Assembly (NCBI GenBank): GCA_002104905.1
Contig: MCFE01000082.1
Coordinates: 115,214 to 179,213 of the forward strand
Origin: Basidiobolus meristosporus CBS 931.73
Taxonomy: Eukaryota; Fungi; Basidiobolomycota
Direction: 5' to 3'
DNA: 64,000 nt
The notes beneath the pieces are model-generated. The model was not told the origin of the DNA. It did not search any database and worked only from the letters and a program-made list of their open reading frames with translations. Positions 34,199 through 46,893 of the stretch are shown one piece after another. Numbering within the stretch: the stretch's first letter is position 1; each line of letters starts with the position of its first letter. The translations under genes were made by a program, and so were the position numbers.

Positions 34199-35359
34199 TC
34201 AAATATCTCGGTGTCTTTTAGCTACAGGTGAGTAGCATTCACCGTCTCCAGAATTGTAAAGTAGATCTGGCGAAGAATTGGTCGATGAGGCGCTTGGGTT
34301 TGTTGAGGAATGCAGCCACGCATCCTCCTCAAGTAGCCATTTGAAATCAAACCCGGTGGTGTCTGGCATCGTGACTGGTGGCAGAGGGCTATACTCCTCT
34401 CCAATGATGCTGGAAAACTCATTGACTGGCAGGATTTCGGTGCCAAACCCCTTCCTCTGAGAGTTGGGCGGAGGTGAGCTGTTGGCAGCGCTACCACCTT
34501 CGTAGTTTGGATAGTAAGACGTGGATTTACTCAATGCAGGTATAGAGAAATAAGGATTCATGAGGCTGAGGTGGGAAGCAGGAGAAATAAAGTATGGCTT
34601 CATTGTCGAGTTGCCCATGTGCTCTATCATCTCGCCGCACTGCCTTTTCAATGGAGACCCCTCGGCAGCATCGATCTCCGACGACGGAGATTGCTTACGT
34701 TTGCTCTTACTACGGTTGGGACTGTATTTGTAGTCGGGGTATTTTTGCTGGTGGTCAAGCTTGATCTTTTCAGCCATCCACTGATATTTTCGTTTCTCTT
34801 CTACCGAGATATTCTTCCACATTTTCCCAATTATCCGAGACACTTCCATGTTGGTGATACCAGCATTGGAGGCAAAGATCTCGGATTGTTTGTCACGGCG
34901 AAATAGGAAAAAGCAGTTGGCAGGCCGTGGGATTTTCGCCTTCTTTGGTTCAGAAGCGGCCTCCTCGGTTTCTTGCTGTTCGGAATGAACAGAGGAAGTG
35001 TCGAAATTGGTATCTGATCCAGGAGGCACAAATTGTTGCATAGGTGGAGTGGTCATCATGCTGGGATAAAATGAGTCATGGGGATGGCCCGGCTGTTGGT
35101 AATAAACATCTTGTACTGAATATGGGCTCTGATACATGGCATAAGGGATATTCTCAGGCAAAGAGGAATGGTAGGAGTGAGACTGGGCTGTGTAAGTCCG
35201 AGATGTAGAATAAGCCATGTTATTGGGGGAGTAGTCATCGACCGGGTATACTTGCTGAGTCTTCATGAGCTGTCTGTATTGTGATATGAGAGGGTGTTTG
35301 GAGGTATATATAGGTGGGTAGGTTTTGATGAAGTGCAATTCAAGTGAAAGGATGTTCAC
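34199..35359 (-). CDS. MATA-type HMG-box transcription factor (HMG-1, central HMG box)
   Basis: KIPRPANCFFLFRRDKQSEIFASNAGITNMEVSRIIGKMWKNISVEEKRKYQWMAEKIKLDHQQKYPDYKYSP; intronless. Real start may be MKTQQ at 35266; TATA-like sequence at ~35381. Confidence 0.92.
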   Translation of the reverse strand: MNILSLELHFIKTYPPIYTSKHPLISQYRQLMKTQQVYPVDDYSPNNMAYSTSRTYTAQSHSYHSSLPENIPYAMYQSPYSVQDVYYQQPGHPHDSFYPSMMTTPPMQQFVPPGSDTNFDTSSVHSEQQETEEAASEPKKAKIPRPANCFFLFRRDKQSEIFASNAGITNMEVSRIIGKMWKNISVEEKRKYQWMAEKIKLDHQQKYPDYKYSPNRSKSKRKQSPSSEIDAAEGSPLKRQCGEMIEHMGNSTMKPYFISPASHLSLMNPYFSIPALSKSTSYYPNYEGGSAANSSPPPNSQRKGFGTEILPVNEFSSIIGEEYSPLPPVTMPDTTGFDFKWLLEEDAWLHSSTNPSASSTNSSPDLLYNSGDGECYSPVAKRHRDI

Positions 35360-36882
35360 TCGAAGTTGGCCGGGTTTAGCTTTTATAAAGTCTCTCCTTG
35401 TAGTGTCCGATCGGAGAATTGATCTCAGCGATTCTTACTGATGAATTTTCGTGTTTGTAGACAGATCTCTACACTAAGAGGTGGCAGCATACCTTCGGAA
35501 AAGCTACAGTCGAGCGCTCTTTACTTACTGCCTGAAATCAGTTTAATCCCCGATGCTGTAGGTCGCTTAGACCGGCCAGGCCTGCCTGCATCGGATTTGC
35601 GAGTGGTTTAGCTGGGATTTCGTGCGCTGAGCCACCCAATGAATGGATGTGGAAATCACGGCGATTGTGAAATATGTGATTCCAGAGGTGATCGGAGAGA
35701 TCAGAACTCCGACTGTGCTTATCCAGTTCAAATCCACAATCATACACGACTGCTTGTCCACAATGGCAGATTTATGGTCAAGTACTTGATTAGAATAGCC
35801 AGTCAATTAACCACGTTGATGGGCATTTGCAATCGACCAATTTTAACATTCATTGTTGCAGTTTCGCCACAGCAGCACGGCTCAATTCTCGCTCTTGTGA
35901 CAGTGTAACCGACTAGCCACCCGCCAAACATCGAAACTATTCGGCTCGGATAAATACTCCACAAAGATACCTATTCATTTACCCACGTTACTTTTCATTC
36001 CGACACCATTGATTACTCAATCGCATGAATCCGCAACATTTAGGGAGGCTATCAGTCGACAACATTGACTCGGCAACTTTGAAACCTATTACGTAGCTTG
36101 TGTCGAATTCTATGTGTTGGGGGTACTACTCAATTGAGATCCGAAATTGCCATTGCCACCCTATCATCGCATTCTTTGTAGCCGGACACATTGAACAGAC
36201 CGTAATTGGGTTTCTGTCGGGCACAAATACGTGAGATCCTGACGACAAGCATTGTGGGCCATTCAGCTCTATCAAGTGCCAGTCAGAGACCCATGCAACG
36301 GCCAAAGGTCGGGTCGCCATTGCTAAGGATCGTTTCTTATCTCATCAGCAGCATTATGCGAGGTTCGCTATTTCATCATCAGGTCACTACTTGATATGAC
36401 ATATCGACATGTGCAATGAATCTAGCTTTGGAAATTCCCCCGGTGAGTGGGTGTGTATTCATTTGATCCGCTAAATAGCAATTTCAATTTGAAACCATGT
36501 CCCTCGTTGACAGATGGGATTTAGTGTTAGCGTACCTCTTGATGTTGCCAAAAAGCAAGTTTCACACGGATTTGGAGTCAGGTTTACACAAGTGGTCCTT
36601 TCGAAATAGCCTATCAAGTGATGAAATGAAAAATCATCGTTTGATGCAATATTGTATTTGGCATATAGCATATAACGAATAAGAGCTTGTGACAGCTTTC
36701 TGGTCCAATCTCCTATTTCTGTAGAATACGGGTTATTGTATATTATATTGCCATATTATTCTAACCTCCAGGCTATTCTGAGTGAAAGGCGAGCTATAAA
36801 TATCATTGCTGGAAGATTACTCTTCTCTGCTTATTACCTCACAAGCTTTCCTGTCTCCTCTCTGTAACGTTTCTATTTCAGA

Positions 36883-38859
36883 ATGTCTATTCAAAAGATC
36901 AATGGAGGTACCGTTGTCGAGCTGGACGGTGACGAGATGACCAGGTATGAGTTGGTGTTGTGAGATTCTAGCCTTCACAAAGACGCTAATTCTTTTCGTA
37001 GAGTCATTTGGACCATGATCAGGGAAAAGGTAAAGGAATTTTCTTGAGATACCAAGCCCGTGGGAATTGAACTAACTGGGTAATGCAGCTCATCCTTCCT
37101 TTCCTTGAACTTGACATCAAATATTATGATTTGGGCATGGAAAACCGTGATGCTACCGACGACAAAGGTAAGCCTCATCAAGGCAATGTTTCTGTGGAGC
37201 TTCTTCTGACTGGTTATGTTTGATAGTTACCGTTGAAGCTGCCGAGGCCATTTCTAAGTACAACGTTGGTATTAAATGCGCCACCATCACTCCTGATGAA
37301 GCTAGAGTAAAAGGTTTGAATAACGAGCTTTGCTGCTTATCTTATTGAAGTGCCGATATTCACGATAAATAGAATTCAAGTTGAAGAAGATGTGGCTCTC
37401 CCCTAACGGTAAGCTTTTGCGACTACTCCTCTTTAGCGTTGTTTCCGAAATTGACTCTATTTGTAGGTACCCTTAGAAACATTTTGGGAGGAACCGTTTT
37501 CCGCGAACCAATCTTGTGCCAAAATATCCCCAGATTGGTTGGAGGTAGGGCGAAATTGAGTGATTCCTATTTCCTGGCGCATTCTAACATTTCGTTGCTG
37601 TAGGATGGAAGAAGCCTATCTCTATTGGTCGTCACGCTTTTGGCGATCAATACAAGGCTACAGATGCCGTCTTCAAGGGTAATGGAAAGCTTGAATTGGT
37701 CTTCACCCCAGAAGATGGCAGCCCTGCTAAGACCTTCGAGGTCTTCGAATACAAAGAAGGCGGTGGTGTTGCCCTTTCTATGTACAACACCGATAAGGTA
37801 GTTTGATTTCGGGAGACTTGAGTCGTACACCAGTGCTCATATACTCTATGTAGTCCATTACCGAATTCGCCCATAGCTGCTTCGTTTATGCATACGACAA
37901 GAAGTGGCCTTTGTATTTGAGCACCAAGAACACCATTTTGAAGGCTTACGACGGTAGATTCAAGGACATCTTCGCCGAGATTTATGAGAGGTATTAGGCG
38001 GAGTTCAGTTTCGATTATTATTGAGCAAGGGTCTAATCAACACGCAATAGAGAATGGAAATCCAAGTATGAAGCCGCCGGTATTTGGTACGAACATCGTT
38101 TGATTGATGACATGGTCGCCTACTGCCTGAAAGCAGGTATGGTATCGGATCCGATATCGATAGCATAACTAGCATTATACTTAATACGTTGTGGTCGTTA
38201 TGTGTAGAGGGTGGTTACGTCTGGGCCTGTAAAAATTATGATGGCGATGTACAATCTGACATGGTTGCTCAAGGTGAGATTTTTCCTCTTTGGTTCAACT
38301 TGGTAATTTGTTGCTAATGGCTCCCCTTACAAACCAGGCTTTGGCTCCCTTGGTTTAATGACCTCCGTCCTGGTTTGCCCTGATGGCAAGACCGTTGAAG
38401 CCGAAGCGGTAAGCTACACTTGATCATTACCAAAGTACTAGACACTAAATTCTTGTTGAAAGGCCCATGGTACAGTCACCCGTCACTACAGACAGCATCA
38501 AGCAGGCCAGGAGACTAGCACCAATCCTATTGCCTCCATCTTCGCCTGGACCAGAGGTTTGGGTAAGTAGTCAACGATTTGAAGGCGTGCAGGCTCCAAA
38601 CTCTAACAAATTGTGCTCCCTCCTAGCTCATCGTGCCAAGTTGGACGACAACAAGCCACTGGCTGCCTTTGCCGACACCTTGGAGCAGGTGTGTGTCGAG
38701 ACCATCGAATCTGGTTACATGACTAAGGATCTTGCCATTTGTATTGCTGGCACCATGAAAGTGGACCGCAGCACTTACTTGAACACCCATGAGTTCATGG
38801 ACAAGCTCGCCGAGAACTTGACCGCTAAATGGGAGAAGGTCCTTCCATCCCACTTATAA
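36883..38859 (+). CDS. IDP: NADP-dependent isocitrate dehydrogenase (IDP/IDH1 type), about a dozen introns
   Basis: [78 protein letters not shown]; ends in -SHL. Confidence 0.96.
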
Positions 38860-46345: not shown

Positions 46346-46410
46346 AGTGGATCACGTAATGCTATCAAGAATCACAACCACATAACGTTGGGGTGTTTGT
46401 GTCTAGAGAC

Positions 46411-46893
46411 TTAATGAAATAACGCTCTTTCTTCGCTGTCAATTTGTTGCCAAATACTCATGATAATACGCGATGCTTCATCTCCATAAATGTTACACTT
46501 CGCCAACTCTTCCATCTTGGCGGTGTAGAAATTGGAGTATCCACGCTGCATGCCCTCTAGCTCAGGGCCAGAGGAGGGAGTTTCCAAAGCGACATATTTG
46601 CGAGCCTTGGTGTGCATCGGGGCGCTTGCAACTTGATTCGGGCCTTCTGGAGGCAAGTATGCAGACCATGAGGTTGCAGAGTCGTTGTACCCGTTTTTCG
46701 CGAGCTCAAAAAGCTTCTCTTCGCCGATCAACAATGGGCGATAACCACGAGGGATATAGTAAAATCTACCCTCCTGGCGCTCTGAAAGGAGGGCAGCAAC
46801 GTGTGAGGGAGGGCGGGAGATGGTAAGGCTGATGTTCTTCCTGATCTGACATTGTACTCCGCTAGATCCGGCTAGTGCGGTTTGAGTGTTCAT
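46411..46893 (-). CDS. Divergent, C-terminally truncated HMG-box-like ORF (HMG-3)
   Basis: C-terminal GYSNFYTAKMEELAKCNIYGDEASRIIMSIWQQIDSEERALFH aligns by eye to HMG helices 1-3 (F-x-x-F ... S-[KR]-x-[LI] ... W-x-x-[LI]-x-x-x-E-[KR]-x-x-[YF]) and stops early in helix 3. Confidence 0.45.
   Translation of the reverse strand: MNTQTALAGSSGVQCQIRKNISLTISRPPSHVAALLSERQEGRFYYIPRGYRPLLIGEEKLFELAKNGYNDSATSWSAYLPPEGPNQVASAPMHTKARKYVALETPSSGPELEGMQRGYSNFYTAKMEELAKCNIYGDEASRIIMSIWQQIDSEERALFH

Follow-up and report, generated by a model that had tools for sequence, protein, structure and literature searches.

At the MAT loci of ascomycetes (APN2 - MAT1-1/MAT1-2 - SLA2), SLA2 adjoins an HMG gene, and fungal HMG proteins of the SRY/SOX/MATA-like class commonly serve sexual development. 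In the sex locus of Mucorales, sexP or sexM is placed between a TPT gene and an RNA helicase gene. The cluster described here lies in a 64-kb stretch of the Basidiobolus meristosporus CBS 931.73 genome, hereafter the window. It shares with ascomycete MAT an HMG gene directly beside SLA2 as well as the presence of more than one HMG-type gene, the latter recalling homothallic ascomycetes in which MAT1-1-3 and MAT1-2-1 occur together. As at the mucoralean locus, the candidate sex regulators of a zygospore-forming fungus are HMG genes, and two divergent ones are oriented in opposite directions. Unlike ascomycete MAT, however, the Basidiobolus cluster contains no detected APN2 or alpha-box gene, shows no idiomorphs between its two copies, and adjoins an SLA2 gene that is one of two lineage-specific paralogues. 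It also differs from the mucoralean arrangement in its flanks (ferritin, globin, IDH, SLA2 and PSS instead of TPT and RNA helicase) and, in contrast to the mucoralean alleles, both HMG genes reside in one haplotype.

We consider it probable, at roughly 0.6, that this is a Basidiobolus-specific cluster of HMG regulators, that its SLA2 resemblance is lineage-specific, and that the second copy found in the same genome is a genome-wide duplicate. Judging by protein class, a sexual or developmental role is plausible and makes the cluster a candidate. Since no sex locus was described for Basidiobolus or any Zoopagomycota-grade lineage in the literature that we searched, the cluster and its duplicates would be a sensible starting point when looking for genes that regulate zygospore formation.

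The order of HMG-1, NADP-IDH, SLA2 and HMG-2 proposed in the initial annotation was borne out, strands included (Table 1). SLA2 and HMG-2 are indeed head to head, because their ATGs are located at 43092 (SLA2, minus strand) and 44171 (HMG-2), 1079 bases apart. Both HMG-1 and HMG-2 are intronless, as had been claimed, and their B. ranarum orthologues are annotated as single-exon genes of 350 and 267 aa, respectively. No other full HMG box was found in the whole window. The genes flanking the cluster or included in it comprise ferritin, globin, IDH, SLA2, an unknown gene, PSS, RPS15, RPLP and Nop52.

Table 1. Positions of the cluster features within the window.
Feature	Position	Strand	Description
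HMG-1	34202..35266	-	intronless CDS, 355 aa from first ATG; stop 34199-34201
NADP-dependent isocitrate dehydrogenase	36883..38859	+	introns; divergent from HMG-1; ATG 36883
SLA2-A	39205..43092	-	ANTH + I/LWEQ, about 1000 aa, introns; ATG 43092
SLA2-A / HMG-2 divergent spacer	43093..44170	.	1078 bp
HMG-2	44171..44968	+	intronless CDS, 265 aa plus stop
'HMG-3'	46411..46893	-	conserved 160-aa gene, convergent with HMG-2

HMG-1 and HMG-2 both belong to the HMG-box superfamily PF00505, with profile positions 1-69 of 69 covered. The Pfam HMG_box scores were 77.6 bits (9.7e-22) for the HMG-1 ORF at 34199-35359 (-) and 87.3 bits (9.4e-25) for the HMG-2 ORF at 44150-44968 (+), against a gathering cut-off of 25.4 bits. 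The pattern noted previously is present in both proteins, as RPxNxF...W...KYPDYK, and the sequence-specific SRY/SOX-like class assigned to both boxes was upheld by profile searches against the PDB, in which the top matches of both families were SRY/SOX chains (E 1e-16 to 1e-23; best chains SRY and SOX17 for HMG-1, SRY and SOX for HMG-2), while HMGB chains scored 20-30 bits lower. The RPxNAF and KYPDYK signatures are common to HMG-1, HMG-2 and the solved SRY/SOX structures. Unlike SRY/SOX, however, the two come from a fungus, and the parts beyond the box are specific to each family. In HMG-1, where the box spans approximately aa 112-180, the C-terminal motif GFDFKWLL is kept; in HMG-2, the N-terminal EGEFFFVPxGFVPVL and the C-terminal FHIxYIP are kept. 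The AF2 model of HMG-2, with a mean pLDDT of 39, was unusable for characterising its N-terminal motif. At the syntenic site of B. ranarum, the single-exon gene P0005 (350 aa) shares 71% identity with HMG-1, and HMG-2 has four relatives in that species, at 76, 64, 55 and 51% identity. HMG-1, HMG-2 and 'HMG-3' are all under purifying selection (dN/dS 0.05-0.14), with values of 0.046 for HMG-1 against B. ranarum, 0.052 for HMG-2 against the second copy and 0.14 for 'HMG-3'. As intact and constrained genes, HMG-1 and HMG-2 would specify transcription factors of the SRY/SOX/MATA-like type that bend DNA at specific sequences.

The third ORF, initially described as HMG-3-like, proved to be a real, conserved gene of 160 aa, but Pfam gave no HMG-box match for it, even at E <= 10. 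A local HMG-box HMM gave only 3-7 bits, covering helix 2, and hhalign against HMG-2 gave an E of 3e-4 over a common N-terminal motif only. Its C-terminal 50 aa resemble helices 1-2 of an HMG box; unlike SRY/SOX boxes, they have neither helix 3 nor the basic N-terminal RPxNAF strand. In the AF2 model, aa 111-160 had pLDDT values of 73-93. Fold comparisons were suggestive but not significant. Foldseek returned no match at E <= 0.001, but about 30 of the 50 top weak matches were HMG boxes, aligned over 45-48 residues with an rmsd of 1.2-1.9; the best VIA Z, 5.3, was not above background. A hidden exon completing the box was considered and rejected, given that all four Basidiobolus copies stop at the same residue, after ...EERALF[HR] and before helix 3, and that DNA conservation across species ends at this stop codon. 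'HMG-3' would be a diverged neighbour copy of HMG-2 that kept the N-terminal motif and lost helix 3 together with the DNA-contacting strand. Normal HMG-box DNA binding has probably been lost with them, and a role as modulator or partner of HMG-2 appears more likely.

A second copy of the region is present in B. meristosporus as a single 19.6-kb HSP of 82.9% identity, collinear end to end. Identity reached 88.6% and 87.8% in the coding regions of HMG-2 and 'HMG-3', above that of IDH (83.5%) and SLA2 (84.8%), both with introns included, and the SLA2-A/HMG-2 spacer was 77% identical between the copies; blastn could not align this spacer with B. ranarum. An unrelated pair of contigs, used as a control, showed 84.8% identity. 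The second copy is therefore an ordinary genome-wide duplicate and neither an idiomorph nor an alternative mating-type allele. In this comparison of two copies within one genome (CBS 931.73), the idiomorph reading was rejected because the copies have diverged evenly and their HMG genes remain conserved. Further, B. ranarum keeps the gene order of the entire block, from ferritin to Nop52, and the SLA2-HMG linkage was found at four loci in the two Basidiobolus species. B. ranarum also carries an older paralogous block with SLA2', HMG-2' and HMG-3' in which HMG-1' is missing; the latter is located on a separate contig that has no SLA2. Since HMG-2 has two further paralogues elsewhere, the HMG genes studied here are members of multigene families, with at least six full HMG-box genes of two families in B. 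ranarum.

These results bear on whether the cluster is a true MAT-like region, with HMG-1 and HMG-2 as ancestral idiomorph genes (analogues of SexP and SexM) now co-resident, which would make these species self-fertile, and the SLA2 link acquired by convergence. This is an unlikely explanation, even though the two divergent SRY/SOX-like genes (about 41-44% identical in their boxes) are found on opposite strands of a stretch of 10 kb, the cluster is kept under purifying selection in two species and no TPT-HMG-helicase locus was seen at the loci examined. Selfing would not be foreign to the genus, in which zygospores form by selfing or outcrossing depending on the species (PMC7466969). Against it stand the collinear, same-type copies with no idiomorphic sequence, the separation of HMG-1' from the older SLA2'-HMG-2'-HMG-3' block and the family structure of HMG-2.

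Another view, that the clustering is meaningless, with HMG-2 and 'HMG-3' as local duplicates, an unrelated HMG-1 9 kb away and no special role in sex, is also quite unlikely in our judgement. In its favour are the multi-copy nature of the HMG-box genes, the unlinked HMG-1' and an interspecies conservation that is part of the general ferritin-to-Nop52 collinearity; likewise, the HMG-site cores AACAAAG and ACAATG occurred in the window at chance level, with no enrichment. However, SLA2, HMG-2 and 'HMG-3' stayed together when they were duplicated, which would at least agree with selection for linkage, and the proteins are of a class commonly acting in sexual development in fungi. The HMG network of Podospora is an example of such proteins (PMC3730723). 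Two points also weigh against our preferred reading of a Basidiobolus-specific cluster: two different SRY/SOX-like HMG genes and a derivative within 12.7 kb are more clustered than we would expect by chance, and the SLA2 adjacency has survived two rounds of duplication. Selection to keep the genes linked, as at a MAT locus, could underlie both.

Similarly unlikely is a convergent sex-determining region in which two HMG genes, doing the work of SexP and SexM, would have become fixed in one haplotype together with a truncated HMG partner, linked to SLA2 independently of Ascomycota. If true, it would represent a convergent MAT-SLA2 architecture, with self-fertility provided by both HMG genes in one haplotype.

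With regard to the neighbours of the HMG genes, the IDH was confirmed to be of the NADP type, as its C-terminal exon matched NADP-IDH PDB chains (4.7e-25); its product ends in SHL, and its collinear counterpart in B. ranarum is an Iso_dh gene of 418 aa. The last exon of SLA2-A (39205-40458, minus strand) encodes an I/LWEQ domain (2.3e-48), and its position corresponds to that of collinear ANTH+I/LWEQ genes annotated in B. ranarum and B. meristosporus (998 and 1000 aa). Compared with the second copy, SLA2-A has a dN/dS of 0.024. A tree of SLA2 proteins placed the Basidiobolus A and B types as sisters with moderate support (82/84), long branches being involved and the A-type stem measuring 0.47. 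This grouping points to a duplication inside the Basidiobolus lineage. A block duplication as the source of the SLA2-A and SLA2-B loci was rejected on account of missing paralogous flanks; the SLA2-A locus had no flanks in common with SLA2-B or with the SLA2 loci of the outgroups.

The initial annotation had also suggested that the locus could bridge the ascomycete and mucoralean MAT architectures. This was not supported, as the SLA2 beside the HMG genes belongs to a pair of sister Basidiobolus paralogues. In the three outgroup genera sampled, Tieghemiomyces, Dissophora and Ramicandelaber, no HMG box was detected at the SLA2 loci, either in stored Pfam hits or in a six-frame HMM scan. The SLA2-B loci of Basidiobolus have no HMG neighbour, and HMG genes were reported to be missing from the SLA2/APN2 scaffolds of chytrids (PMC6572847). 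APN2, alpha-box, TPT and RNA helicase genes were absent from the flanks examined, both in the Pfam matches of the scanned window ORFs (130 aa or longer, so that short exons could escape) and in the Pfam families stored for genes annotated at syntenic loci. The lack of linkage in three other zygomycete genera and in chytrids suggests that the Basidiobolus arrangement was not inherited, and descent of this SLA2 flank in the manner of ascomycete-type MAT is not supported by these comparisons. Thus, although SLA2 adjoins an HMG gene at the four Basidiobolus loci as at ascomycete MAT, a linkage ancestral to zygomycete-grade fungi and Dikarya is extremely improbable in view of the sister relationship of the two SLA2 types, the HMG-free outgroup, chytrid and SLA2-B loci, and the flanks examined.

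We therefore return to a Basidiobolus-specific regulator cluster, which would have come to adjoin SLA2-A, one of the two SLA2 paralogue types of the lineage. SLA2-A, HMG-2 and 'HMG-3' would since have moved together as a block, duplicated at least twice. Because SLA2-A is one of two lineage paralogues and the block was co-duplicated, the likeness to the ascomycete SLA2-MAT arrangement is probably lineage-specific, a coincidence or convergence rather than an inherited ancestral layout. SLA2 adjacency alone should not be taken to show that a fungal MAT layout is ancestral, since here it involves a lineage-specific paralogue and the linkage is missing in the other early-diverging fungi sampled.

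Regarding the remainder of the window, no tRNA genes were found, and the nearest transporter gene (56858-57886) matched PF04142, PF03151 (TPT) not being among its matches. The search for paralogous flanks at other HMG loci yielded only RPL26, common to the window (~58.5 kb) and the HMG-1' contig.

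The gene content initially assigned to window positions 34199-46893 was borne out by domains, ATGs and strands for HMG-1, the NADP-dependent isocitrate dehydrogenase gene (IDH), SLA2 and HMG-2. Because the SLA2 start codon falls at 43092, SLA2 and HMG-2 lie head to head, with 1079 bases between their start codons. The best matches of both HMG-1 and HMG-2 family profiles were SRY and SOX chains, with HMGB chains well behind, so the placement of both full boxes in the sequence-specific class holds. The two genes belong to separate families, and their boxes are approximately 41-44% identical. 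Both had also been described as intronless, and this is confirmed by their B. ranarum orthologues, which are annotated as single-exon genes. Scanning all six frames of the 64-kb window with a local HMG-box HMM revealed no further boxes. The IDH product ends in Ser-His-Leu (window 38848-38859), a PTS1-like tripeptide, and an N-terminal presequence was not obvious; on these sequence features, the enzyme may be a peroxisomal isoform.

Coordinates of the cluster genes, flanking genes and SLA2-B loci (window positions unless another locus is named)
Feature	Coordinates	Strand	Remarks
Ferritin gene	30733-31251		
Bacterial-like (truncated) globin gene	32769-33305		PF01152
HMG-1	ORF 34199-35359; CDS 34202-35266	-	355 aa from first ATG; complete Pfam HMG_box (9.7e-22)
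NADP-dependent isocitrate dehydrogenase gene	36883-38859	+	
SLA2 (type A)	39205-43092	-	Exon 39205-40458 with I/LWEQ domain (2.3e-48); ATG at 43092
HMG-2	ORF 44150-44968; CDS 44171-44965	+	265 aa from first ATG; complete Pfam HMG_box (9.4e-25)
HMG-3	ORF 46411-46893	-	
Gene adjoining HMG-3	47371-49171	-	
Nucleotide-sugar transporter gene	56858-57886		PF04142 (2.8e-109)
RPL26	58549-58957		
RPL26 on the B. ranarum HMG-1 paralogue contig (L005)	1809-2454		
SLA2 (type B), L007	10001-13659		
SLA2 (type B), L008	10001-12778		

The corresponding B. ranarum locus (GCA_040143965.1) was fully collinear with the window, comprising ferritin, globin, HMG-1, IDH, SLA2, HMG-2, HMG-3, an unknown gene, PSS, RPS15, RPLP and Nop52. 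In this comparison, dS was saturated and dN/dS was 0.05-0.07. The ferritin and globin genes adjoin HMG-1 and occupy the same place in B. ranarum. Further along, a nucleotide-sugar transporter gene is located 10 kb from HMG-3. The triose-phosphate transporter (TPT) family, PF03151, flanks mucoralean sex loci, and was not among the Pfam matches of this gene.

B. ranarum also carries a second, older SLA2-HMG-2-HMG-3 block on a 9.9-kb contig, two more HMG-2 paralogues away from SLA2, and an HMG-1 paralogue which adjoins RPL26 and RPL35Ae and has no SLA2 nearby. The distance to RPL26 is about 4 kb for this paralogue and about 23 kb for the HMG-1 of the window; the shared neighbour may be left over from an old duplicated block.

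The third ORF had been listed as HMG-3-like; it stands as a conserved gene, but an HMG box could not be demonstrated in it, as no Pfam match was obtained even at E <= 10 and the local HMG-box HMM gave only 3-7 bits, covering helix 2. The four Basidiobolus copies (158-160 aa) all terminate after ...EERALF[HR], the stop codon coincides with the limit of cross-species DNA conservation, and dN/dS is 0.14; HMG-3 is a real gene. With HMG-2 it has in common the N-terminal motif EG-x-[FY][FY][FY]-[VI]-P-x-G-[FY]-x-P-[VL]-L (hhalign E 3e-4). An AF2 model was confident for residues 111-160 (pLDDT 73-93), which are predicted to form two helices and a stub. Foldseek returned no significant match, although HMG boxes, superposed over 45-48 residues (rmsd 1.2-1.9), made up about 30 of its 50 highest-ranked weak matches, and the best VIA-align score (Z 5.3, an HMGB3 box) was not above background. 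We infer that HMG-3 would have originated as a local copy of HMG-2 and diverged, its HMG box being truncated. The gene adjoining HMG-3 is conserved, at 293 aa in B. ranarum and at 253 aa in the second B. meristosporus copy of the region; its product has no Pfam match, and the antisense frame of the gene gives an Arg/Glu/Asp/Leu-rich repeat.

This second copy of the whole region is located on contig MCFE01000677.1 (L009), and it aligned with window positions 36467-55709 as one 19.6-kb HSP of 82.9% identity, the HMG-1 of the second copy lying outside the locus compared. An idiomorphic relationship between the two copies was rejected in view of this end-to-end HSP and of coding-region identities of 88.6% for HMG-2 and 87.8% for HMG-3. 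Gene identities including introns were 83.5% for IDH and 84.8% for SLA2, protein identities were 92.8% for HMG-2, 88% for HMG-3 and 96.9% for the SLA2 C-terminal exon, and dS between the copies was approximately 0.5-0.7. A control comparison of an unrelated contig pair carrying the second SLA2 type (L007 and L008) gave 84.8% identity across 22.9 kb. We conclude that the two copies are genome-wide duplicates, representing either homeologues or haplotypes that are very divergent.

With the C-terminal exon of SLA2 as query, exhaustive HMMER searching retrieved this second Basidiobolus type (SLA2-B, whose C-terminal region is about 55% identical to that of the HMG-linked SLA2-A), together with full-length SLA2 of other early-diverging fungi. 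In the ML tree the A and B types were sisters with moderate support (82/84), and SLA2-A had a long stem of 0.47. Within SLA2-A, the older B. ranarum block branched first, followed by the B. ranarum locus syntenic with the window and then by the window paired with the second copy. SLA2-A is the faster-evolving type, yet it is strongly constrained (dN/dS 0.024).

The initial annotation had proposed a possible MAT locus bridging the ascomycete and mucoralean architectures. This bridge is unsupported, since no HMG gene was found beside SLA2-B, whose neighbours are Gtr1/RagA, ELL, Nup35, an MFS transporter and a C2-domain gene, nor at the SLA2 loci of three outgroup genera, and no APN2, alpha-box, TPT or RNA-helicase genes were present among the window ORFs scanned and annotated neighbours. 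For the outgroups (Tieghemiomyces parasiticus, Dissophora ornata in two assemblies, and Ramicandelaber brevisporus), both stored Pfam matches and a six-frame HMM scan were negative in the available flanks, which extended up to 10 kb on each side and were shorter where a contig ended. The A locus had no flanking gene in common with either the SLA2-B or the outgroup SLA2 loci. In a chytrid comparison, SLA2/APN2 scaffolds were reported to carry neither HMG nor alpha-box genes (PMC6572847). On this sample, the SLA2-HMG linkage is confined to Basidiobolus, where it concerns a single member of a lineage-specific pair of SLA2 paralogues.

The cluster is most likely a genus-specific set of constrained SRY/SOX-like HMG transcription-factor genes, in which HMG-2 and HMG-3 would form a local duplicate pair, HMG-1 comes from a separate family, and the unit of SLA2-A, HMG-2 and HMG-3 would have undergone two or more block duplications. 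Other fungal HMG factors of this class provide an analogy (e.g., PMC3730723) that makes a function in sexual development plausible. Zygospores in Basidiobolus arise by selfing or outcrossing, depending on the species (PMC7466969). The cluster is at most a candidate mating-type determinant, and our literature search yielded no description of a sex locus for either Basidiobolus or Zoopagomycota.

The simple intronless HMG-1 and HMG-2 products (window 34202-35266 and 44171-44968) are absent from the protein collection for the B. meristosporus genome. For HMG-2 of the second copy, the annotated model is spliced, encodes 315 aa and reaches into the HMG-3 spacer (L009 10551-12692); public annotation of these HMG genes is probably incorrect or lacking. 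B. ranarum has no young duplicate pair for the genes of the region. In the B. meristosporus CBS 931.73 assembly, by contrast, there are fully collinear contig pairs, 83-85% identical across genes and spacers and with dS of about 0.5-0.7, which point to a recent whole-genome duplication, a hybrid origin or very divergent haplotypes.
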